A stretch of 64,000 nucleotides of DNA, from positions 62,001-126,000 of the IMG/VR virus record IMGVR_UViG_3300021959_006010, one strand, 5' to 3'. The translations under genes and the position numbers were made by a program. The notes beneath the pieces are model-generated. The model did no database searches and was not told the origin of the DNA. It saw only the letters and a program-made list of their open reading frames with translations. This document shows, in pieces, positions 3,249 through 60,111 of the stretch (position 1 is the stretch's first letter; each line of letters starts with the position of its first letter).

Positions 3249-3276
3249 TTATACTATTACTCGAGAGTAATGTCAA
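3248..3276 (-). promoter_or_regulatory. sigma70-type promoter
   Basis: TTGACA-N17-TATAAT, perfect consensus. Confidence 0.8.
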
Positions 3277-24407: not shown

Positions 24408-25024
24408 AATTTTAACTCAGTTAAATTTCTATGACTGCCAATTGTTCCTTTAAAAAAGGTATTGAATGACAAACTAATTCTTGTATGATCTTGTTCTAAA
24501 GGTCTAACACTATGTACTAGTTTAGATGGAAAAATCAACAATGATCCTGTTTCTGCTGGCAACCACCAAGAACTAGAATTATAAATGTTATAATTGTCTG
24601 ACGGTAGTTCAAATGGCTCCCATTGGTTGTCAAAGAAAAATATTTTATCTTCTTCTGTTGTGTTAATATAAAACACTCCGCTTAAAAAACTATTATTATG
24701 AGAATGAGTATGATGGAATCCACCTTGATCAGTAAAGTTTAACCAACTTTGTGTAATAGTTAGTTCTGCATCAGTTTTAGTAGCAAACACTGTATCAAAA
24801 TATTCATTTATCTTTTTCTCGCAAAAACTTTTAAGACTTTGTAGTTCTTTAGATTCGAGAATATATCGATCAGTTGATGTTAAATTGCCGTCATTTAGAT
24901 CTGATTTTTCTTTTTGTTCTAAACAAAAATTATACTCTTCTTCAGTTAAGTCTCTATCTATTTTTGTGTTACCTACTGGTTTAGGAAACAAAGGTGTTAG
25001 TTCCATATCAATCTCCAAAGTCAA
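24404..25024 (-). CDS. 2OG-Fe(II) oxygenase (TIGR02466-like)
   Basis: SWLN, HHTHSH, LSGVFY, LLIFPS.L.HSV, RISLSFN. Confidence 0.85.
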   Translation of the reverse strand: MTLEIDMELTPLFPKPVGNTKIDRDLTEEEYNFCLEQKEKSDLNDGNLTSTDRYILESKELQSLKSFCEKKINEYFDTVFATKTDAELTITQSWLNFTDQGGFHHTHSHNNSFLSGVFYINTTEEDKIFFFDNQWEPFELPSDNYNIYNSSSWWLPAETGSLLIFPSKLVHSVRPLEQDHTRISLSFNTFFKGTIGSHRNLTELKL

Positions 25025-27680
25025 ACAAACTATTAAAAGTAGTATGCTGTTTTGTATCTTCTAGTGGATAGTCGAGCACACCGATCAAGTTGTCTAGTTT
25101 GTTGTCAATAATAGTTTCAGCCATAGCTGCATCATCAAATGGCAATTCTTTGAACCATTCTGGCAAACGTAGCTCATCTGTAGGATATGCTACACTAGTA
25201 TATCCTAGCGGATTTGGTTTAAGTTTACAAACAATAACTTTCATACCGTCTACAATCTCTTGCGAGTATTTGTCACCGTTCATACGTTTTAGTGTATTCC
25301 AGTTGATACTTGCTCGAACGTGTCCAGGCATGTTTGCTTTGCCTTGCTTTTGCTCAAGACGCTGATAGTGTCCAATCTTGTTTGCACGTTTAGGCGAACC
25401 TTTCTCCCAACCTGGCATTTCTTGGAACTCTTTGCGGAACTGTGTAATACGCTCTAGAACATCTTCTTGTGGAGTATCTGTAAGAACCATTAGTAGTAGT
25501 TCTTTTAAGAAGTCCTGCATAAACACCGGAGTGTCTGATCTACGTAAGTCTAGACCCATTGCTTTTACTTTACCAGGCTTACCGTCTGTGTCAGCTCGAA
25601 AACCTTCTAAATCAGTTACTAGTGCCGCATAACGCTTCTTAGTAATGTACAAGCCTGAACTAGCAACAATCTCACGACCGGCTGCAATAACATCACTTCT
25701 TGTCTTAGGACAATGGAATGCTCTTACCATAAAGTCAGGAAATGTAGTATTTGCTTGCTCACACACTTGATCGTACAATGCAATACATTTGTCAATGTTA
25801 AAATCAAGTTTGCCTGCTTCGACATCATCTTTAAGCACAGGCCATGCACTAAAGTATACAGAGTCAGTATCACCATAGATAACTGCTTTACCTACATGAT
25901 CATACTCGCCTGTAATACAACTATTAACTTCGGCACTCATATGCTTAACAATCTGTCTACCAGTTAAGGTTGTTGATTGTCCAATACGTTTATCAAAGAA
26001 TCTACAGCCTGGGTTAAGAATAGCACCGTACAAGCTATTAAGATTAATTTTCTTAACAAGTTGACGTTTATCCCAGTACTCAATCTCTGCATCAATGCCT
26101 GCATCTTTAGCTTTCTTAAGTTTCTTTTGTAGTTCTTTTCGTTCTGCATACCACCTCTTTAGGATACCTGGAATAACACCTTCAAACTCTGTGGTAAAGA
26201 TAGTACCATTTGCACTAAGCATCCACGGCATTTGACTATCAAATATAAGTTGATAAATTTCTGCGCCGCTTAGTACATCTGAACGTCCATCTTCCCAGTC
26301 AACAGTAAGTGCAATATCTTTGCGTTGTTCCATAACTGCTTCGTATTCTTCTGTTGAAAAACGTCCTTCCCAACTACCTGCAAATGACTTTTTCTTTAGT
26401 GTCATGTCTTCGTGTACACGAGCGTCTGAAATCTCTGGACGAATTTGTCCTATAATTGTTTCTGGCGCCATGTTCAGCGCACGAATCACTGACGGATACA
26501 GTGAGTTCAAGTCCATTGAGCCAATGTACTTGTGCAATCCTTTTTTAGGAAACGCAACATAAGCACCTGCTGCCTGTGTGCTTTCTGACTCATCACGTTT
26601 AGGACGATTAGGAACTTGCAGTCCACGGTTGTGTGCTTCGTTAATAATACCTTGTTCTGTAACAGCAACAGCACCCATTGTAGTTTGTAGTAGTACAGTA
26701 TTCTCGTGTGCAATGCTGTTTGACAAGTCGATAAAACGTAGTTTCTTATCTAGTTTGTCTAGTAGTGCAGTATCCTGAATGTTATATTCAATAAACTTGC
26801 GAAAGTCATTGTTGTATAGTTGATCTAGTGTGCCTTCATACGGTACCTTGTTTTCGCCTACTTCAATCTCGCCAATTGCGTCCAGTCGATATGAGTGACG
26901 TTCTTCATAAGTGTATTTGCGATACAGTTCTAAACTGTCCAAGTGTACACGACCTACCAAGTCAAATGTAACTGCTTGCTTCCCGTATTTTTCATACTCA
27001 CGCTTCTTAGGCAACTGACCCCACAAGCAGAAACGTCTTGTATCGTCTTTACTCAATACACGACTTACACGGTTTACAGTATACGGAATATCGTAACCTT
27101 CACTGTTCCAACCACTTAGGATGTCTGCATCTTGTATCAAGTCTAAGAACGTGTTTAGCATGTCTGCTTCTTTTTCAAACAGTACAACACCTTCTAAACC
27201 TTCTACTTCTTTTTCTGCTTGCTCCATAGTAAGTGTCTTAGGCGGAACAGCAAGACACACCATTGTCTCTAACCATTGCAAGTACACAGACACAGACGTA
27301 ATGCCCATAAATGGATCTGCTGGATCAGCAAAGCCACGTTCTGGGTCAAAGTCTGTCTCAATATCGAAAAACGCAATGTTTAGTTTAGGTGCATCTTGGT
27401 TGAGATAGTTCTCACTCAAACATTGGAAGATTGGATTAATGTCGCTTTCGAACAAGTTCTTGCCTTTGTTAATAGCAACTTCTTTTCGAAAGTCTTTTGT
27501 GTTCTTACAAACAATACGACTTAGAGGATCTCCGTACACACTCTTGTACTTGCCTCGAGGATCTTCATAATAGAACGTATATTTTGCAGGGTATTCGTGG
27601 AAATGTCGCTTTCCATCGCGGCGTTCGACTACTCGAATAATATCTTGATCACGATCAAACATCGCATCTACATATGGCAT
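25008..27680 (-). CDS. family B DNA polymerase
   Basis: Exo I FDIETD, motif A DLNSLYPS, motif B KINLNSLYG, motif C YGDTDS, KKRY. Confidence 0.97.
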   Translation of the reverse strand: MPYVDAMFDRDQDIIRVVERRDGKRHFHEYPAKYTFYYEDPRGKYKSVYGDPLSRIVCKNTKDFRKEVAINKGKNLFESDINPIFQCLSENYLNQDAPKLNIAFFDIETDFDPERGFADPADPFMGITSVSVYLQWLETMVCLAVPPKTLTMEQAEKEVEGLEGVVLFEKEADMLNTFLDLIQDADILSGWNSEGYDIPYTVNRVSRVLSKDDTRRFCLWGQLPKKREYEKYGKQAVTFDLVGRVHLDSLELYRKYTYEERHSYRLDAIGEIEVGENKVPYEGTLDQLYNNDFRKFIEYNIQDTALLDKLDKKLRFIDLSNSIAHENTVLLQTTMGAVAVTEQGIINEAHNRGLQVPNRPKRDESESTQAAGAYVAFPKKGLHKYIGSMDLNSLYPSVIRALNMAPETIIGQIRPEISDARVHEDMTLKKKSFAGSWEGRFSTEEYEAVMEQRKDIALTVDWEDGRSDVLSGAEIYQLIFDSQMPWMLSANGTIFTTEFEGVIPGILKRWYAERKELQKKLKKAKDAGIDAEIEYWDKRQLVKKINLNSLYGAILNPGCRFFDKRIGQSTTLTGRQIVKHMSAEVNSCITGEYDHVGKAVIYGDTDSVYFSAWPVLKDDVEAGKLDFNIDKCIALYDQVCEQANTTFPDFMVRAFHCPKTRSDVIAAGREIVASSGLYITKKRYAALVTDLEGFRADTDGKPGKVKAMGLDLRRSDTPVFMQDFLKELLLMVLTDTPQEDVLERITQFRKEFQEMPGWEKGSPKRANKIGHYQRLEQKQGKANMPGHVRASINWNTLKRMNGDKYSQEIVDGMKVIVCKLKPNPLGYTSVAYPTDELRLPEWFKELPFDDAAMAETIIDNKLDNLIGVLDYPLEDTKQHTTFNSLFDFGD

Positions 27681-51730: not shown

Positions 51731-52644
51731 TACAACCTCGCTAGACGTATCAGTGTTGCAGCTAAATTTATCTCTGGATCTGCTACTAGTGTATGATCAA
51801 CTAGTCCTTGTTTAATTACAAGTACTGCTTGATCTTGTTGTTCTTCACTTCCGAACAGTTCAATGTTATCATACAACCAGCGATAAACTTCTTCCATTTC
51901 TTCTGGACGAATAGCACCGCACAACAGTTTACGTGCTTCTTGGATCTTGCCTGCTTTAAACAGTTCAACCATATCCAACTTCCAGTCGCTCTCGCCTGTG
52001 TCGCCTTGTTGTGGAGCAACTAATACTCCGTCGACTGAATTCATTTGCACCATATTGATGCATTTTCTTAAATCTGGATATGTTGCTTTGACATACGTGT
52101 CCAAAGTATCAAGGTCCGGGCTAACTCCCTCCGTAATAAGTATTTCCGCGACCCTCGCAGTAAACTCTGTCTGGTCGATTTTGGCAATATGGAAACCTTG
52201 GCACCTGCTGTGGATAGCCGGTATAATACGGTTTGGATAGTTACACGTGAGTATAAAACGAGCAGTGCTATGATATTCTTCCATAACACCACGTAACGCT
52301 GCTTGAGCGTTTGGAGATAAGTAATCAGCCTCATCTAATAGTACCACCTTAAAGTCCCCAAATGGGATCATTTGTACAAAGTTTACAATTTTATCACGAA
52401 CATCATCTACAGAGTTTGTTCGCGATGCGTTAATTTCTAGTACGTCTAAATCGTTGACGTCTAGTTCGTTGAACAACAATTTTGCCAACGTTGTTTTTCC
52501 TATTCCAGCATTGCCTGAAAACAGCAAGTGCGGGATTGTTTTGTCTTTTATCCAAGTTTTTACCTGCGCTTTTTGTGCTTCGTCTCTAAACACATAACCG
52601 TCTACTGTCTTCGGACGATACTTTTCTACCCATAATTCTTTCAT
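51730..52644 (-). CDS. clamp loader ATPase subunit (RFC small subunit/gp44-like)
   Basis: WVEKYRP, GNAGIGKT, EINAS, LDEAD, SRC, PDLRK. Confidence 0.92.
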   Translation of the reverse strand: MKELWVEKYRPKTVDGYVFRDEAQKAQVKTWIKDKTIPHLLFSGNAGIGKTTLAKLLFNELDVNDLDVLEINASRTNSVDDVRDKIVNFVQMIPFGDFKVVLLDEADYLSPNAQAALRGVMEEYHSTARFILTCNYPNRIIPAIHSRCQGFHIAKIDQTEFTARVAEILITEGVSPDLDTLDTYVKATYPDLRKCINMVQMNSVDGVLVAPQQGDTGESDWKLDMVELFKAGKIQEARKLLCGAIRPEEMEEVYRWLYDNIELFGSEEQQDQAVLVIKQGLVDHTLVADPEINLAATLIRLARL

Positions 52645-53171
52645 TGTGTGATCCCTAATTCTTTATATGCCATTTGTACACCTTTTGCTTGGAAGTATGC
52701 ATCTGCTAGTGCATTGTGTAAATCACTTTGTCCTATTACTTTACGTGGATCAACTTTACAGCAAGCAAAAAGTGTGCGACTATCTCGCACTTGCCAAAAC
52801 TGCCACGGTATAGGTTTGCTACACTGTCGCAACATATCTTCTAAAATTGTAATGTCAAAGCCATAACCGTGACCCCAAAGAACATCAACACCATTCATCC
52901 ATTTAGGCAATGTGTCAATAAAAGTGTCCATAGCAATTCGTCCTTCTTCTGAGAACGCTTCTTCTTGTGCTTTAGGATCCTGTTGCGACCACCAATTAAT
53001 AGTAGCATCACTTACTTGACGATATTGACTGTCGATGTCTAATTTATAATAAAACTCACTATGCGGTTCAGTGTCTGAAAGTGGATCAAATTTTACACCA
53101 CCTACACTAAGCACTGTTGCACCGGGTGTTGTATGCAGTGTCTCTAAATCGATCATTGCATGTATTGTCAT
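52641..53171 (-). CDS. DEDDh 3'-5' exonuclease
   Basis: IDLETL, FDI..L, RDSRT, HNALADA. Confidence 0.85.
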   Translation of the reverse strand: MTIHAMIDLETLHTTPGATVLSVGGVKFDPLSDTEPHSEFYYKLDIDSQYRQVSDATINWWSQQDPKAQEEAFSEEGRIAMDTFIDTLPKWMNGVDVLWGHGYGFDITILEDMLRQCSKPIPWQFWQVRDSRTLFACCKVDPRKVIGQSDLHNALADAYFQAKGVQMAYKELGITQ

Positions 53172-53422: not shown

Positions 53423-54094
53423 TTATTCGCGATTTCCGAGTAGTGATAATAGCATCTGGAATAGGTTTATAAAATTCAAATATAAACTAATTGCAAATTG
53501 TATTCCGTATCTTGGATCGCCGCCATGACTTATATAAATGTTTTTAGCGTTTTGTGTGTCCCAAGCAGTTAATCCTGTAAACACAACAACACCAATAATA
53601 CTAATTACAAACTGTAACGCACTACTTGCTAAAAAGATATTAACAACCATTGCAATAATGATACCAATTAAGCCCATAAGCAAAAAGTGTCCAAATCCTG
53701 TAAGGTCACGTTTAGTAGTATAACCCCATAGACTTGCACTTGCAAAAGTTGCTGCTGTAATAAAGAAAACTTGTGCAATGCTTGCGCCTGTATATATAGC
53801 AAAAATTGGTGCAAGTCCGACACCCATCACTGCTGTAAAAGTGTAGTAGAATGTGCGAAGTGTATCATAACTCCAATTTTGTCCTGCAAAGCTATACCAC
53901 AAGATCATTCCTAATGGCGCTAGTGCAAAAATCCATATTGCTCCTGCCATTGCAGCAAGCATTCCGGTTGAATAAACTAGCCATGCTACAATTCCACTAA
54001 CAGCAAGTCCTGCCGCAGTATGGTTGTACATGTTAAGCATAAACTCACGTAAACCTTCGTCGTACTGTCTACGTGCTTCTGTAATTGTACTCAT
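53423..54094 (-). CDS. Bax inhibitor-1/YccA family membrane protein
   Basis: DEGLREFMLNMY, about 7 TM helices, YTTKRDL, WDTQ, LYLNFINLF; GGAG RBS. Confidence 0.9.
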   Translation of the reverse strand: MSTITEARRQYDEGLREFMLNMYNHTAAGLAVSGIVAWLVYSTGMLAAMAGAIWIFALAPLGMILWYSFAGQNWSYDTLRTFYYTFTAVMGVGLAPIFAIYTGASIAQVFFITAATFASASLWGYTTKRDLTGFGHFLLMGLIGIIIAMVVNIFLASSALQFVISIIGVVVFTGLTAWDTQNAKNIYISHGGDPRYGIQFAISLYLNFINLFQMLLSLLGNRE

Positions 54095-54145
54095 TGTATT
54101 TCTCCTCAAATAAAGGTACCGTCCATAAATTAATAGGAGGTAGAT

Positions 54146-54508
54146 TTAATTCTGGCCAAGAAATGGTGCTAGTTCCGGAGCCTTCCAACCTTCTGGTTTT
54201 AATACCTTGCCGTCTTCTCGCTTGATTACTTTGCCTGTTTCTGGATTGATTTTTGCAAAGTTTGTATTCATTACTTCTTTCCATGCACCTTCTCCGTCAA
54301 AGCCGCCTGCTCGAATAGCACCCATAGTAACAACTAGAATGTCAATTAGTGCATCAAGTTGTTCTACTTTATCTTCTTCTTCAACCGCAGTTAAAAGTTC
54401 GTCAAATTCTTCTGCAATTAAACCAAGATACATTTTATAGTTTGCTTCACTCGGTTCTTGATCACATGCAGAACCAAACGTGTCAATATCTTTAAATGGA
54501 TTTGTCAT
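54146..54508 (-). CDS. MazG-like/all-alpha NTP pyrophosphohydrolase
   Basis: LIAEEFDEL, DALID, N..K, DGKVLKPEGW.AP. Confidence 0.85.
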   Translation of the reverse strand: MTNPFKDIDTFGSACDQEPSEANYKMYLGLIAEEFDELLTAVEEEDKVEQLDALIDILVVTMGAIRAGGFDGEGAWKEVMNTNFAKINPETGKVIKREDGKVLKPEGWKAPELAPFLGQN

Positions 54509-54517
54509 TAATACCTC

Positions 54518-54928
54518 TTAATATTGTTGACCCATAAATGAGCTAGGATCAATTGTTGCATGTTCGCCGTCGCTATATTCTGCACCGATTGTAACACCGT
54601 CTGGTTTTTCATCTGAATATGCTAAAACGCTTTCTGTTTCAACCATACGAATTGTAACTTCGTTGCCGTTGATATCCATGTCTACGCCTCGTGTCCAACG
54701 ACCGTGTTCTACAAGGATCCAATCGCCTACTTCGTAAGGTTCGTTATTTTCTGGACCTTTTGCATGTACTCGAGCCCAACGTGGATATATACCTCGGGTT
54801 GTTCCGTCATCGTCTCTAAGGATTAATCCACTCTTTGTTTTTTGTTCTCCAAAATACATATCTTTTACAAGAACTCTATCACCGATAGGTCTTAGATCAC
54901 CTTTAATGCGATTTAAGTTTATAGCCAT
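54518..54928 (-). CDS. groES: GroES/Cpn10-like co-chaperonin
   Basis: LRPIGDRVLV, TKSGLIL, KGP, VGD.ILV. Confidence 0.8.
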   Translation of the reverse strand: MAINLNRIKGDLRPIGDRVLVKDMYFGEQKTKSGLILRDDDGTTRGIYPRWARVHAKGPENNEPYEVGDWILVEHGRWTRGVDMDINGNEVTIRMVETESVLAYSDEKPDGVTIGAEYSDGEHATIDPSSFMGQQY

Positions 54929-55344
54929 TATTCACCTTTTTTTACAAAATTGCCATCTTCGTCTTCTACCCATTCTGCATCCATTTCGTCAAATTCTTTT
55001 AATTCAGATGTTGAAGGGGTAGCTTCTTTTTGTACTTTTTGTTGTGCTCTAGTTGCTTTCTTAGGAGTAGTTTCTACAGTTGTAGTAACTTCTTCTGTAC
55101 TTGCTTGAGCAGCAACAGGCTTAGGAGTTTCTGAAGCAACAGGCTTAGTTTTATAATATTCCTTTGCAACATCTTCTCTCTTTTTAACAATCTTGCCACC
55201 GGGTCCAAGAATATCGCCTCTAGCGTTCATTCTTGCATTACCAACAGCAGGCGTCAATTCGTTCTTTTTACGTAGCAAGTCCATGTCAATTGACTTTCCT
55301 TGCATTGTTTTATAGACTGTACGTCCGTTTCTTCCAGCAGCCAT
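54928..55344 (-). CDS. hypothetical protein
   Basis: 138 aa; N-terminal NARGD.LGPGG motif, low-complexity tail. Confidence 0.75.
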   Translation of the reverse strand: MAAGRNGRTVYKTMQGKSIDMDLLRKKNELTPAVGNARMNARGDILGPGGKIVKKREDVAKEYYKTKPVASETPKPVAAQASTEEVTTTVETTPKKATRAQQKVQKEATPSTSELKEFDEMDAEWVEDEDGNFVKKGE

Positions 55345-55374: not shown

Positions 55375-55382
55375 TATTTATT
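55375..55382 (-). promoter_or_regulatory. late promoter-like motif AATAAATA
   Basis: Intergenic variant of the recurrent motif. Confidence 0.4.
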
Positions 55383-55935
55383 ATCTCAAAAACTCTCGCC
55401 AATCAAGACTGTACTTGATTGAATTAATACGATGTACACCGATCAAATACAGCACATAACTGGCAACACTTGATCCACGTCCTACACCCCATACAATATC
55501 GTTCTCACGCATAAAGTCTACAAGATAAACCATATAGCGTAATAAGTCATTCATATCACGCTTTTTAAATTCTTGTAATTCTTCGTATGCTCTATCCCAT
55601 TCGGGTGTAGTTTCAATATGGAAATCCTCACACTGTAATTCTTCCATAAGTTTTGCCGCTACCCATTCTTCTATAGCAAGCGACTTATATTCTTCAGGCA
55701 TAAACCATTCGCCTTGACATACGCCGTCAAAAGTCTTTTGATCTACATCTAGTGGGATATACTTCTGTAGCTTGTCAAAGCCTTGCTCTTCCATAGCTGA
55801 GTTGAATTTGTCTACATCGTCTGATTCGTCACATAGTACAACGTGTACCTTATCCGCATGACCACTATAAATCATGTCGATAAGATCGCGATTAGAGAAT
55901 CGTGGAATACCTAGTTCGTCTGTTTTCATAAGCAT
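55381..55935 (-). CDS. truncated DNA polymerase III alpha (DnaE)-like fragment
   Basis: R..EEL...GVGRGSSVASYVLYLIGVHRINSIKYSL...FL matches the DnaE GPGRGS...FERFL block. Confidence 0.75.
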   Translation of the reverse strand: MLMKTDELGIPRFSNRDLIDMIYSGHADKVHVVLCDESDDVDKFNSAMEEQGFDKLQKYIPLDVDQKTFDGVCQGEWFMPEEYKSLAIEEWVAAKLMEELQCEDFHIETTPEWDRAYEELQEFKKRDMNDLLRYMVYLVDFMRENDIVWGVGRGSSVASYVLYLIGVHRINSIKYSLDWREFLR

Positions 55936-55941
55936 ATATGT

Positions 55942-55970
55942 ATTTTACGACACATTTATAAGATTGTCAA
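55942..55970 (-). promoter_or_regulatory. sigma70-type promoter
   Basis: TTGACA-N17-TAAAAT directly upstream of the DnaE fragment. Confidence 0.6.
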
Positions 55971-56187
55971 GAGAATCTTCACCGGAATCTTGACCATCTC
56001 GTTGTCTTTGCATAGCAACGGCACTTCTTGTACGTAACTCTTCTTTATACATATTAAGGACTGTTGCAATTTGACTTTGCAAATCAGGATTGTTTGTAAG
56101 AAAATACTTCCTACTTAATTCATTAATTTTATCATCTATTTGATTGTCTGATAACTCAGAAAAACTATCAACCAAAGGATTAAACAT
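55945..56187 (-). CDS. hypothetical protein
   Basis: 80 aa helical ORF; TAATG coupling. Confidence 0.7.
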   Translation of the reverse strand: MFNPLVDSFSELSDNQIDDKINELSRKYFLTNNPDLQSQIATVLNMYKEELRTRSAVAMQRQRDGQDSGEDSLDNLINVS

Positions 56188-56771
56188 TATGAGAATTGTC
56201 CCAAATATCTAGCAAAAATAGTTACACCACCGTCGTTTGTAAAAAACTCTATAATTGTTGATACATCAGTGTCAGCTGGAGTAGTTAGTGCTGACCCTGT
56301 CCATGCTGCATCTCCGTCAGTTTTAATAGCACCAACAGCACCATTAAAAGTAATGTCACGTGCAGTACCATCATCAATTAATTCAATTCTCATTGTGCCA
56401 AAACGCTCGCTAGTTGGCCAATCTGCTAGTGTAATACTTAATGTTCCAGCAACAGTTACTTTTTGGTAGTGTCCGTTGATAAAACTTATTGTTGTGTCGG
56501 CATCAATAGTTCCGCCAATATAACCTTTAAAAGTTGATTGTTGGAAGTCAGCATCAATAATAAGACTGCCTGCCATATTATTTTCTAATGTGCTGTCTGT
56601 TAATGCGTCCTTTAAAACTGCTTTACTTTGAATATCTTCAATTTCAGCTTTTGCTGCGGCAAGACTGTTTTTGATAGTGCTGAAATTATCTCTAAATCCT
56701 TGGCTATCATTATCTCTGCCAGCAACAGGGTATTCTGCATCAATTGAACTACTATCTATGTTACTTGCCAT
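56187..56771 (-). CDS. putative structural protein
   Basis: 194 aa; N-terminal YPVAGRDNDSQGFRDNF, coiled coil, beta-rich C-terminus. Confidence 0.65.
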   Translation of the reverse strand: MASNIDSSSIDAEYPVAGRDNDSQGFRDNFSTIKNSLAAAKAEIEDIQSKAVLKDALTDSTLENNMAGSLIIDADFQQSTFKGYIGGTIDADTTISFINGHYQKVTVAGTLSITLADWPTSERFGTMRIELIDDGTARDITFNGAVGAIKTDGDAAWTGSALTTPADTDVSTIIEFFTNDGGVTIFARYLGQFS

Positions 56772-56805: not shown

Positions 56806-59800
56806 TTATACGTTAAAACTATAATTTGCGAATACAATATATTGCTCTTCTGATTTTCCTAGAGTAGAATCAATAATATACCTATCAGCAGTAAAATCAA
56901 TTTTCTTTAAATCAAAATCTTTATTCTGTATGTTAAGCAAAACTTCTCCACTTTTTCCAGGTTTACAATATGCCAAAGGAACTGCTGGAACATATGCAAG
57001 AGCTCCTATACTTCCTTCTTGTGGTGTTCGCATCCATAACGGTAAAAAGTCTGTTTGAACTGCTCCGATATCTCTAATTCTATCTTGCATATTTTGTAAG
57101 TTAGAAATATACTTTACATTATCTCTAGTTTGGTTAACTTTTATTGCGTTTGAGTCTGCTTTAGTTGTATTTGTTTCTGGTCTAAATCTCCAAGGTTCAC
57201 TATCTGTTGGAGTAGTAGAAACATTTACTTCTGTACTGTCTCTTAGTATAACATCTAAATCATCGTTGTCAACAGATTGTGTAATATCTCCGTCTCGTGT
57301 ACTAACAGTCAAACGCTCATTATCTAAGTCAACTGAATCAGTTGACGATCTTCCTTGTATTTCAATTTGTGGCGTACCAGTTCTATACTTTGTAACATCA
57401 TCTTTTACTGCATAAGAAACACTATCTGCTGTAATATGCTTGCCACCTTTTATTTTAAATTGTTTTGCTGCTTCGCCTTGTTTAGGCTGTGCTGGATCGA
57501 TTATTTCTACATATACTACTTCGTAAACTATCTCATTAGTTCCGGGTTTTTTAGCAAATGCTGTTTTTATTTCTCCGAAACGAAAACGTTTTTTCTTATG
57601 ATTTTTAGAAATAGCACTAACATATTCACTTATATCCTTTGTTTCAACTCCAGCAAAGGCTAGCATTTTAATACTTGTCTGCAATCCAAATTCAGGATCG
57701 TTTGGTCTATAAATTGTTTCTGGAGGAAATATGTCAGGATCGCTAACAAAAACTCTGTATTCATCTCTCATCGATGGTTCAATAAGTGGACTGATGTACA
57801 AGTTACTATACAGTGTTTCCTCTAAGTCGAGAACAGTTAAACTAAATTCTTGTTCAACTGCACTGTATTGAAATCTGTCCTGTGCCTTAATAGTAAACCT
57901 AAATGTCCTGTCAATGCTAGTTGTTGATGTATCAAATAATGTATTCCCCCCATCAAATCTTGTAAGACCGAGTGTAGTTTCTGTTTCAAATTGGGACGGC
58001 TTACCTATTAATTCTCCATCATAACTCAAATACATGCCTGGAGGCATTGTTCCACTTGTTACCTCATATACAAGAGGTGCGTTTGGAATTGTAGTTGTTG
58101 CATCAACTCTAATAGTACTTACAGAATTAGCTTGAATAGTTCCTAGGTTTGAATTTGTAGTAAATTGAATAGTACTGTCAACTTCGCCTAATATGTTAAG
58201 AGTAAATGTTTTAGATGTATAAGGGTTGTTAATATCTTCGTTAGCGTCAGTGGAGATTGATTTAACAAACGAATCTTTTTCTTTCAATGCCCAACTAATA
58301 GTTTGACCTTGTTGGAAACTTCTTGTTAAAACATTATCTAATTTAACTCTTTCAATAGCATCTTCAGTAACTGTATATATTGCTGCATCACCTGGACTAA
58401 CAAAAATAGTTTCTATTCTTGAACGACGAGTTTCTGCTGTTTTTGCAGTTATAAACCTAATTCTATTAGTTGTTGCTTCGTAAACTTCTGCTGAAAATCC
58501 TGTTAATTGTTCTAAAACTCTTTTTATCTTTTCTGCAAATGTTTCAACGATTGGATCACCATCATCATCTGTGATGTTTTCAATTTCTGTTACTACATCC
58601 CAGTTTATTTCTAAATCTGCAAAATCACTCTCAATATCCCATTCTACGTAAGGGAATATACTTTCGATTGTGTAGACTTCGGTATCGGAGTAATTAAATT
58701 TTGTATTTTGTAATAGTTCTCTAGATTGATAATCAACACTATTAATATAAAAGAAGTCAACTCCACTTGGAACAATATCGTATGTTTGTATAAAGAAATT
58801 CGGACGTAATGTATCAGTTAAGTAAACTATATCATACTCTTCTTGAGTGTTATCAACACTGTTTATAATATAAAAGTTTCCTTTAAGTTCGAGTATTTGT
58901 CCTCGAAGAGCAGCAACATCATCTATTCCGTCTGCTGTTCCAATAGGAAGTTTTCCTATTTTAAAATTGTTAACGCCAGCAAACGTATCTTCAAGTACTG
59001 TACCAGTAATTTCTGCATAATCTGTATCACCAGTAAATCGTGTTGCTCTAATAGTAAATTTATATTCTTGTGTTACCGCAGGTTGATAAGGAATTCTTCC
59101 TACAATTTCTCCATTAAGACTGTCTAATGATAATCCTTCTGGTAATCTACTAGGTGTACCATCGTCATTAGTTTCGTCTTCTGTGTAAATTACGTTTCCG
59201 CTTAATGTATAGTCATCAACTATATCAAGGTACAATGTTACATAATTGTTTGCACGTTTATAACCTAAATTAGCAGGGGTTATCCAAACTGGTGTTCTAA
59301 TGTGTGTTATGTCAGCAGTAAATACACCAGTACCAACTTTCATAACAGAGTTGTCTGCACGTAAGAAATCATCACCAACTACGTACATTTCAAATTCTCT
59401 GCGCGATATACTGTCACCGTCTGATACTGATACTGCGAATCTGTAGCGTCTGTTTAATTTTTTAAGACTTTGTGTCTTAAAACTAAAATCATATGTTTCT
59501 GTATCATAGAAAAATGTTCCAAAGCCGTTATCGCTATAGAACGCAAAATCCATAGGAAACTCACCATAAGGATTTGTATCATAACCTCCTGAACCTGCAC
59601 GTTTGTCTAATGCTAATAAAGGTTCCACAACTCCGACTATTCTACCGTCACTAGTAAGTTGTAATCCTGGAGGCAAAATACCATCACCCGAAGCAATAAA
59701 ATATTCTAGCTCGTCTCCGGCTGACGTATCAGAATCGATAGCAACTAATTGATAGTCGATAATTTCTGAATCTAAAACAAATAGTCGAGAATTTATTGCA

Positions 59801-60111
59801 GCTAACAGTCCTTCGTTTGTAATCCATTGCGGATCATCTGGACCTACTACTAAGATATTAAATGTTATATCTTCAAATGTATAATCATTTGTTGCTCTAA
59901 TTACAAATTTGTAATTTGTATCTCTTGGAACTTCAAATGGAGTACCTACAAGCTTTAATCCTTCGATTCTCATTCCAGGAGGCATGTTTCCTGCTATTTT
60001 TTGTAATTGAAGAGATTCATCGTAATCAATAGGTAATTGTATCTCGGTTGTTACTTTTTCTTGTAATGTTGCTATAACACTATTATTGTTTGCTTTCCAG
60101 AGAGATGCCAT
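56806..60111 (-). CDS. large structural protein with Ig-like (He_PIG-type) repeats, baseplate/tail
   Basis: Repeats G.(L/M)P.G(L/M).(L/I)...G.(I/L)VG.P about 4 times (GNMPPGM, GILPPGL, RLPEGL, GTMPPGM). Confidence 0.7.
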   Translation of the reverse strand: MASLWKANNNSVIATLQEKVTTEIQLPIDYDESLQLQKIAGNMPPGMRIEGLKLVGTPFEVPRDTNYKFVIRATNDYTFEDITFNILVVGPDDPQWITNEGLLAAINSRLFVLDSEIIDYQLVAIDSDTSAGDELEYFIASGDGILPPGLQLTSDGRIVGVVEPLLALDKRAGSGGYDTNPYGEFPMDFAFYSDNGFGTFFYDTETYDFSFKTQSLKKLNRRYRFAVSVSDGDSISRREFEMYVVGDDFLRADNSVMKVGTGVFTADITHIRTPVWITPANLGYKRANNYVTLYLDIVDDYTLSGNVIYTEDETNDDGTPSRLPEGLSLDSLNGEIVGRIPYQPAVTQEYKFTIRATRFTGDTDYAEITGTVLEDTFAGVNNFKIGKLPIGTADGIDDVAALRGQILELKGNFYIINSVDNTQEEYDIVYLTDTLRPNFFIQTYDIVPSGVDFFYINSVDYQSRELLQNTKFNYSDTEVYTIESIFPYVEWDIESDFADLEINWDVVTEIENITDDDGDPIVETFAEKIKRVLEQLTGFSAEVYEATTNRIRFITAKTAETRRSRIETIFVSPGDAAIYTVTEDAIERVKLDNVLTRSFQQGQTISWALKEKDSFVKSISTDANEDINNPYTSKTFTLNILGEVDSTIQFTTNSNLGTIQANSVSTIRVDATTTIPNAPLVYEVTSGTMPPGMYLSYDGELIGKPSQFETETTLGLTRFDGGNTLFDTSTTSIDRTFRFTIKAQDRFQYSAVEQEFSLTVLDLEETLYSNLYISPLIEPSMRDEYRVFVSDPDIFPPETIYRPNDPEFGLQTSIKMLAFAGVETKDISEYVSAISKNHKKKRFRFGEIKTAFAKKPGTNEIVYEVVYVEIIDPAQPKQGEAAKQFKIKGGKHITADSVSYAVKDDVTKYRTGTPQIEIQGRSSTDSVDLDNERLTVSTRDGDITQSVDNDDLDVILRDSTEVNVSTTPTDSEPWRFRPETNTTKADSNAIKVNQTRDNVKYISNLQNMQDRIRDIGAVQTDFLPLWMRTPQEGSIGALAYVPAVPLAYCKPGKSGEVLLNIQNKDFDLKKIDFTADRYIIDSTLGKSEEQYIVFANYSFNV

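Follow-up and report, generated by a model that had tools for sequence, protein, structure and literature searches.

The gene at positions 55381..55935 (minus strand) of the window, by which we mean the whole analysed stretch of 64,000 nucleotides (62001-126000 of virus record G000; 275,366 bp, CheckV completeness 77%), probably encodes one of two subunits of a Pol III alpha-like nucleotidyltransferase without PHP and thumb parts that is typical of group 2.2 (T4-related) jumbo phages, a reading to which we give a probability of roughly 70%. This gene, frag1, would provide the N-terminal nucleotide-binding subunit of a split minimal enzyme, and the catalytic partner, frag2, is encoded elsewhere in the same virus record. 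We consider it highly probable that the two products form a two-subunit enzyme, and slightly better than an even bet that the pair is an active DNA polymerase. frag1 is an environmental member of a family that was already described in 2021.

As the sequence-only reading had stated, frag1 is a clean ORF with a match to DnaE (184 aa plus stop, ATG start, TAA stop). Residues 112-183 matched positions 23-94 of 260 in PF07733 (DNA_pol3_alpha; E 3.2e-10, 40.5 bits, cut-off 23.9), and phrog_11127, a profile of 171 aa, matched with an E-value of 4.4e-39. The NCBIfam DnaE models covered the same stretch as the Pfam match, and all equivalog models among them stayed far under their own full-length cut-offs (TIGR00594, 36.1 bits vs. 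434 bits). With a profile of 30 homologues, residues 68-184 (55384..55734, minus strand) were aligned to residues 267-392 of E. coli Pol III alpha, a stretch that opens with the start of the palm and runs up to FERFL, the equivalent of which is LDWREFLR in frag1. In DnaE, a helix-GS motif-helix element grips the triphosphate of the incoming dNTP. The corresponding triphosphate-binding motif in frag1, GVGRGSS (residues 150-156; 55468-55488, minus strand), is invariant among close relatives, and GxGRGS is kept in 123 of 126 distant representatives. The LDWREFLR end lies 29 residues past GVGRGSS and stands opposite E. coli 392-393, and the catalytic Asp pair, D401/D403 in E. coli numbering, falls within ten residues past this end point. 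The observation that the motif is followed by a stop just ahead of the catalytic aspartates was thus correct, and on these alignments the likeness to DnaE is not a matter of chance.

The first 67 residues (55735..55935, minus strand) make up an N-terminal module without detectable relative, which is predicted to pack on frag2. Neither the profile search against PDB sequences nor the protein atlas gave anything above chance for the N-terminal 67-84 residues. Residues 1-85 had a dN/dS of 0.10 in the marine clade and are divergent across phage clades. A resemblance of this part to the end of the PHP domain was not confirmed, and the profile alignment puts residues 68-80 at the start of the palm. 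The frag1 locus was present in estuary and marine metagenomes, gave no megablast match to cultured phages and was found in none of the RNA runs in the RNA-run search.

In the whole of record G000 one other ORF was found with the Pfam finger model and TIGR00594. This is frag2, a gene of 186 aa located outside the window (G000:C1:237753-238313, equal to L005:1348-1908, minus strand) and 120 kb from frag1. A search of the genome for the PDIDxD-bearing remainder of DnaE had been suggested, and frag2 is that remainder, since its N-terminus, MPDIDIDFADR, begins at the very point of DnaE where frag1 stops. TIGR00594 matched frag1 and frag2 only (model positions 294-391, 397-408 and 592-637), the Pfam finger match of frag2 was under the cut-off (14.5 vs. 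22 bits), and phrog_11778 matched it with an E-value of 5.6e-61. Three blocks were aligned to M. tuberculosis DnaE1: residues 1-12 to 413-424 (MPDIDIDFDDR), residues 49-134 to 565-663, including the third-aspartate strand (KLDFL/KMDFL) and IRPAK/YRPG, and residues 157-171 to 773-787 (FKKAHA/FNKSHA). Compared with DnaE1, frag2 is without about 100 residues between blocks 1 and 2 (thumb) and about 90 residues between blocks 2 and 3 (fingers), and has nothing past the last block. All three catalytic aspartates are supplied by frag2 and are invariant; the invariant residues are D3, D5, D7, D65, R132, P133, K162, K163 and H165. The motifs of both proteins are also kept in the MIJ3 and 121Q copies. 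Because the successive blocks align in DnaE order, frag1 and frag2 are collinear with DnaE, and at their junction (E. coli 393|399) about 5 linker residues are missing.

The models for the PHP and HhH domains (PF02811 and PF14579), which both gave matches in the controls, had zero matches in record G000 (77% complete), and in the same record none of the PHP, thumb, HhH/clamp-binding, OB or tau-binding parts of Pol III alpha was found. Consequently, of the notion that a complementary fragment might rebuild a full DnaE the first half stands, as frag2 exists, and the second does not, as the pair amounts to a minimal enzyme of roughly 370 aa. The description of frag1 as "stand-alone" has to be given up, since its complementary gene is encoded outside the window in the same genome.

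The sequence-only reading had offered as explanations a catalytically dead mimic or inhibitor of the host replisome, a nucleotide sensor, or one half of a split polymerase. A lone and dead fragment, whether it mimics or inhibits the host replisome or senses nucleotides by binding them, would agree with frag1 itself having the GS motif and zero catalytic aspartates, and with its ownership of an early-type promoter. Because the partner gene exists, this explanation is largely refuted and now appears very improbable: the catalytic half is present in the same genome with its three invariant aspartates, co-occurs with frag1 everywhere and is strongly predicted to bind it. None of the surfaces by which DnaE contacts epsilon (PHP), the beta clamp or tau is present, and this weighs against the mimic or inhibitor and the sensor alike; furthermore the hosts span Alpha- to Gammaproteobacteria, and the most conserved part of frag1 has no DnaE counterpart. 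The proposal of a split polymerase is the one that gained support, from the presence of frag2 in the genome, its co-occurrence across jumbo phages and the predicted binding. The corrective result is that frag1 is real and conserved, and neither an orphan nor dead.

The two genes were followed across cultured and environmental phages. Among records of cultured jumbo phages, frag1 was present in 93 and frag2 in 96, always as separate loci inside replication-gene modules. By genus, the tallies for frag1/frag2 were Escherichia 34/34, Pseudomonas 11/11, Klebsiella 10/11, Erwinia 8/8, Salmonella 8/8 and Xanthomonas 4/4, and the distance between the genes within single genomes ranged from 4 kb (RsoM2USA) to 182 kb (Atu_ph07). 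No partner gene was seen within ±3 kb of frag1 or frag2 in 160 environmental viral loci, nor frag2 within ±10 kb of frag1 in 9 loci of a distant clade. An exhaustive search with frag1 returned 1049 representatives at 50% identity, 757 of them at E ≤ 1e-10, which puts the size of the family at about 750-1050 clusters of 50% identity; fused or long forms were absent among the best 150 of the 1049 matches (67-222 aa). In public GenBank records the labels of the two genes are inconsistent ("DNA polymerase III alpha", "DNA polymerase", "hypothetical", "membrane protein"). For orthologues of frag2 in particular, many records give "hypothetical protein" and some give "putative membrane protein" (JN882285.1 and MT939486.1 are among the records).

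The length conservation and dN/dS of homologues, which had been named as a check, showed that the ends of both genes are fixed (81 + 81 relatives) and that median pairwise dN/dS was 0.16 for frag1 and 0.12 for frag2 (NG86; dS was about 1.1-1.5, so these values are approximate). The C-terminus of frag1 lies 29-31 residues past the GS motif in 116 of 126 distant representatives, and frag2 starts with MPDIDIDF in 73 of 81 relatives. By these measures both genes are under purifying selection. The pair could in principle be the decaying remnant of a complete phage dnaE, or exteins or exons that are joined by intein trans-splicing or RNA splicing, and the position of the split inside a domain is shared with the intein-split DnaE of cyanobacteria. 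Decay was ruled out, because dN/dS is low and the ends are fixed, and also the frag1 family, with at least 7994 clusters of 90% identity in its length band, of which the best 120 are 164-187 aa, speaks against it. Neither intein nor intron is present at the split: frag1 stops 29 aa past the GS motif and the Met of frag2 comes directly at PDIDIDF, which leaves no room for an intein, and since there is no spare sequence at either end of the split, joining by an intein is excluded. In addition, the genes lie 4-182 kb apart and, in this genome, in reverse order on the minus strand. We regard the chance that either remnant or spliced product is the right description as negligible.

A two-subunit enzyme is also what the structure predictions point to. 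The complex of frag1 and frag2 was predicted with an ipSAE of 0.92, compared with 0.17 for the best of 3 controls, a score that may partly reflect remembered structures of single-chain DnaE and is to be read as likeness to an intact palm and not as proof of binding. Of 78 solved complexes, 51 attain the mark used for such predictions; of 108 mismatched pairs, 2 do. Contacts agreed by at least 99% between runs, and the pLDDT of the partner was at least 92. The tightest predicted contacts connect residues 149-150 of frag1, in the strand just ahead of the GS motif, to residues 6-8 of frag2, in the Asp-bearing strand, and would look like a Pol-beta-fold sheet rebuilt from two chains. In the same model residues 3-33 and 66-79 of frag1 contact residues 37-45 and 59-62 of frag2. 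The two proteins are thus predicted to bind each other. As monomers, both were modelled by AlphaFold2 with low confidence (pLDDT 68.6 for frag1 and 67.0 for frag2), and the models were poor exactly in the sheet-forming parts, i.e. residues 1-35 and 149-155 of frag1 and 1-11 and 20-64 of frag2; this is a weak indication of what may be an obligate partnership. Foldseek searches with the monomer models gave weak E-values, with DnaE chains ranking first for frag1.

Both genes have a fixed place among replication genes. The phage has, as the sequence-only reading said, a complete family B DNA polymerase (PolB; 890 aa, 25008..27680, minus strand) with exonuclease and polymerase Pfam domains (PF03104, E 2e-18, and PF00136, E 8e-37), which is the main replicase of the phage. 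The frag1 locus reads frag1, a small ORF, a GroES-like co-chaperonin and a clamp loader, all on the minus strand. The small downstream ORF (138 aa, 54928..55344; phrog_14844) is a homologue of 121Q gp57 and comes after frag1 in other jumbo phages too, the GroES/gp31-like co-chaperonin (54518..54928) matched Pfam Cpn10 (E 6e-6), phrog_931 and phrog_3188 and is syntenic with MIJ3 and 121Q, and the RFC/gp44-like clamp-loader ATPase (51736..52644; Pfam AAA, DNA_pol3_delta2) is the conserved end of the module, with tblastn E-values of 4e-122 to 8e-61 for the clamp loaders of MIJ3, XacN1 and 121Q. The frag2 locus reads a RadD/UvsW-type helicase, frag2, a small opposite-strand ORF, a structural protein and primase. 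The gene order is common to Pseudomonas phage MIJ3 (PA5oct-like), E. coli phage 121Q and Xanthomonas phage XacN1. The presence of PolB, and of clamp loader, helicase and primase in conserved synteny, agrees with membership in the group 2.2 jumbo phages of Iyer et al. 2021 (PMC7824862).

In this genome the frag1 module carries insertions of MazG, a Bax1-I membrane protein and an Rv2179c-like exonuclease, and the frag2 module those of a kinase and a cytidylyltransferase-like ORF. The MazG-like nucleotide pyrophosphohydrolase (54146-54508, minus strand; phrog_671, E 1e-33) sits between the GroES-like gene and that of the Bax inhibitor-1/YccA-family membrane protein (53423-54109, minus strand; Pfam Bax1-I, E 6e-56; without PHROG match). 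It is followed by a lone Rv2179c-like DEDD 3'-5' exonuclease (52641-53171, minus strand; E 2.5e-34), which shares the last 4 nt of its gene with the beginning of the clamp-loader gene and could be a proofreading or RNA-processing partner. Directly upstream of frag2, halves of phrog_10255 ("kinase", a 230-aa profile) were matched by two ORFs, L005:1908-2306 and L005:2553-2987 (both minus strand; G000:C1 about 238313-239392), with an ORF of 104 aa between them; one is the P-loop kinase-like part and the other the cytidylyltransferase-like part, and the pair may be another gene encoded in pieces. Upstream of frag1 there is an ORF of 194 aa (56187-56771, minus strand) without PHROG or Pfam match and one of 1101 aa (56806-60111, minus strand) without PHROG match; at the corresponding place 121Q has a virion structural protein. 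The Pfam Gp23 capsid search gave no match anywhere, controls included.

These surroundings bear on the question of what the pair does. One could argue that it is a two-subunit Pol-beta-fold nucleotidyltransferase which is not a templated DNA polymerase at all, and instead serves, for example, in template-independent tailing of DNA ends, in synthesis or sensing of a nucleotide signal, or in modification of DNA or nucleotides. The absence of thumb, HhH/clamp-binding and OB parts, with about 100 thumb and about 90 finger residues deleted relative to DnaE1, fits such a function, as does the fact that genes of nucleotide metabolism (MazG; the kinase and the cytidylyltransferase-like ORF) adjoin both loci. 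Those neighbours are, however, insertions specific to this genome, whereas the neighbours conserved across clades are clamp loader, primase and helicases, and the finger motifs which DnaE uses for dNTP and template (RP.. and K.H) are invariant. We find it unlikely that the pair is something other than a templated DNA polymerase in this sense.

The sequence-only reading had also given frag1 a sigma70 promoter of its own, and this held up. The promoter, TTGACA-17-TAAAAT (55942..55970, minus strand), matches 11 of 12 consensus positions; its -10 hexamer ends 6 nt ahead of the ATG and its -35 hexamer sits inside the last codons of the upstream ORF. Among 43 distinct upstream sequences of relatives, TTGACA was kept in 39, the 17-nt spacer in all 43 and the 6 nt to the ATG in 41. 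The Leu-Asp codons within the -35 are always CTT GAC, although these genes use CTT for 17% of their Leu and GAC for 41% of their Asp, and because of this invariance the constraint appears to act on the nucleotides. From this geometry, an early mRNA with no leader or almost none is predicted. In the 275 kb of G000 we counted 12 near-perfect sigma70 sites, where 40 simulations gave 0.5 on average and never more than 2; all but one of the 12 are located 6-32 nt upstream of an ORF. They have the appearance of a limited group of strong early promoters for the host RNAP. Four are at window positions 3276, 21012, 28342 and 55970 (minus strand), and the 8 others are elsewhere in G000. The only other site with the 6-nt geometry belongs to the primase gene (TTGACA-17-TATAAT, G000:C1 about 236580, minus strand), and the frag1 and primase mRNAs may both be leaderless early transcripts.

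Taken together, the following mechanism for the two-subunit Pol III alpha-like enzyme is proposed. Subunit 1 (frag1) would contribute the helix-GVGRGSS-helix element together with the first part of the palm; from subunit 2 (frag2) would come the two strand aspartates, the third one in KLDFL and, as finger motifs, IRPAK and FKKAHA. The chains are predicted to associate without a covalent link, and in the predicted complex the strand ahead of the GS motif would pair with the Asp-bearing strand, thereby creating a composite active site. The heterodimer may then be an active, probably distributive, DNA-templated polymerase that assists PolB in replication or repair, e.g. by primer extension or gap filling. 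A role beside PolB is suggested by the fixed place in the clamp-loader and primase-helicase modules together with the early-type sigma70 promoter. Templated synthesis is nevertheless not assured, because the thumb, most of the fingers and the HhH/clamp-binding and OB parts, by which DnaE holds DNA, are absent. Biochemical or genetic work on any member of the family was not found in the literature, including that later than Iyer et al. 2021.

More tentatively, and on balance doubtful, the roughly 370-aa two-chain enzyme could be the smallest active C-family DNA polymerase and a dedicated second polymerase of the replisome that is gated by two-subunit assembly. It would then extend primers made by the neighbouring primase before a hand-off to PolB, similar to DnaE and PolC in Bacillus. 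Gating would come about by expression of the subunits from different transcription units, with frag1 under the conserved leaderless early promoter whose geometry is also found at the primase gene. In a still bolder version, which is the idea of Iyer et al., the pair might retain the form that C-family polymerases had ancestrally. An active heterodimer would be the minimal catalytic core of the bacterial replicative polymerase family, without PHP, thumb or clamp-binding domain, and would mean that a Pol-beta-fold active site can span two polypeptides. The family sits in the replication modules of a whole jumbo-phage lineage, including therapy-relevant phages of Pseudomonas, Klebsiella and E. 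coli.

A split minimal DNA polymerase III alpha of group 2.2 jumbo phages was described by comparative genomics by Iyer, Anantharaman, Krishnan, Burroughs and Aravind (2021, Viruses 13:63, PMC7824862, sections 3.4.1, 3.5 and Fig. 3b), who in these sections proposed that the split enzyme works alongside PolB to synthesise one strand or to carry out repair, and that it can serve as a model for the ancestral enzyme. The pair found here is like the system in those sections: one gene encodes the N-terminal unit for NTP binding and another, far from it, the C-terminal unit for binding of Mg2+ and template, a family B polymerase is present alongside, and further Pol III alpha domains are lacking (in a record that is 77% complete). 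Relative to the same sections and figure of that paper, our analysis adds the precise position of the junction and the size of the deletions, the fixed termini and the purifying selection, the size and environmental abundance of the family, a heterodimer that is predicted with strong support, a clade-specific N-terminal module predicted to lie in the interface and a conserved promoter of the leaderless early type. Direct homologues with the same gene neighbours are found in PA5oct/MIJ3, RaK2/121Q-like phages, XacN1, Atu_ph07 and RsoM2USA. The copy described here is from an uncultivated estuarine/marine phage. In full-length matches to cultured phages its identity is 32-41%, and in the conserved C-terminal half it reaches at most about 52%; its 67 N-terminal residues are clade-specific.

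Like bacterial Pol III alpha (DnaE1; 2HNH, 5LEW, 3E0D), the pair has a Pol-beta-like palm with the GS motif and three aspartates in collinear order, and the DnaE1 finger motifs RPG and FNKSH have counterparts in frag2. Unlike in single-chain DnaE, the GS motif and the three aspartates are divided over two chains, which have about 370 aa in total vs. about 1160 in one chain, are without PHP, thumb, HhH/beta-binding, OB and tau-binding parts and fall below the family cut-offs. In cyanobacteria (Synechocystis/Nostoc) DnaE is encoded by two distant genes with an intein half on each, and the chains are ligated. A C-family polymerase on two distant genes is thus common to both systems, but in cyanobacteria the split lies elsewhere and has intein halves, whereas frag1 and frag2 are without intein sequence. 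The PolB gp43 is split in some T4-related phages. Split beta/beta' subunits of RNA polymerase in phiKZ-like jumbo phages are described in PMC7824862. As in split gp43 and the phiKZ-like RNA polymerase, the frag1/frag2 pair would have a catalytic domain built from separately encoded polypeptides; the folds are unrelated, however, and in those systems the pieces are usually adjacent or belong to a larger complex.
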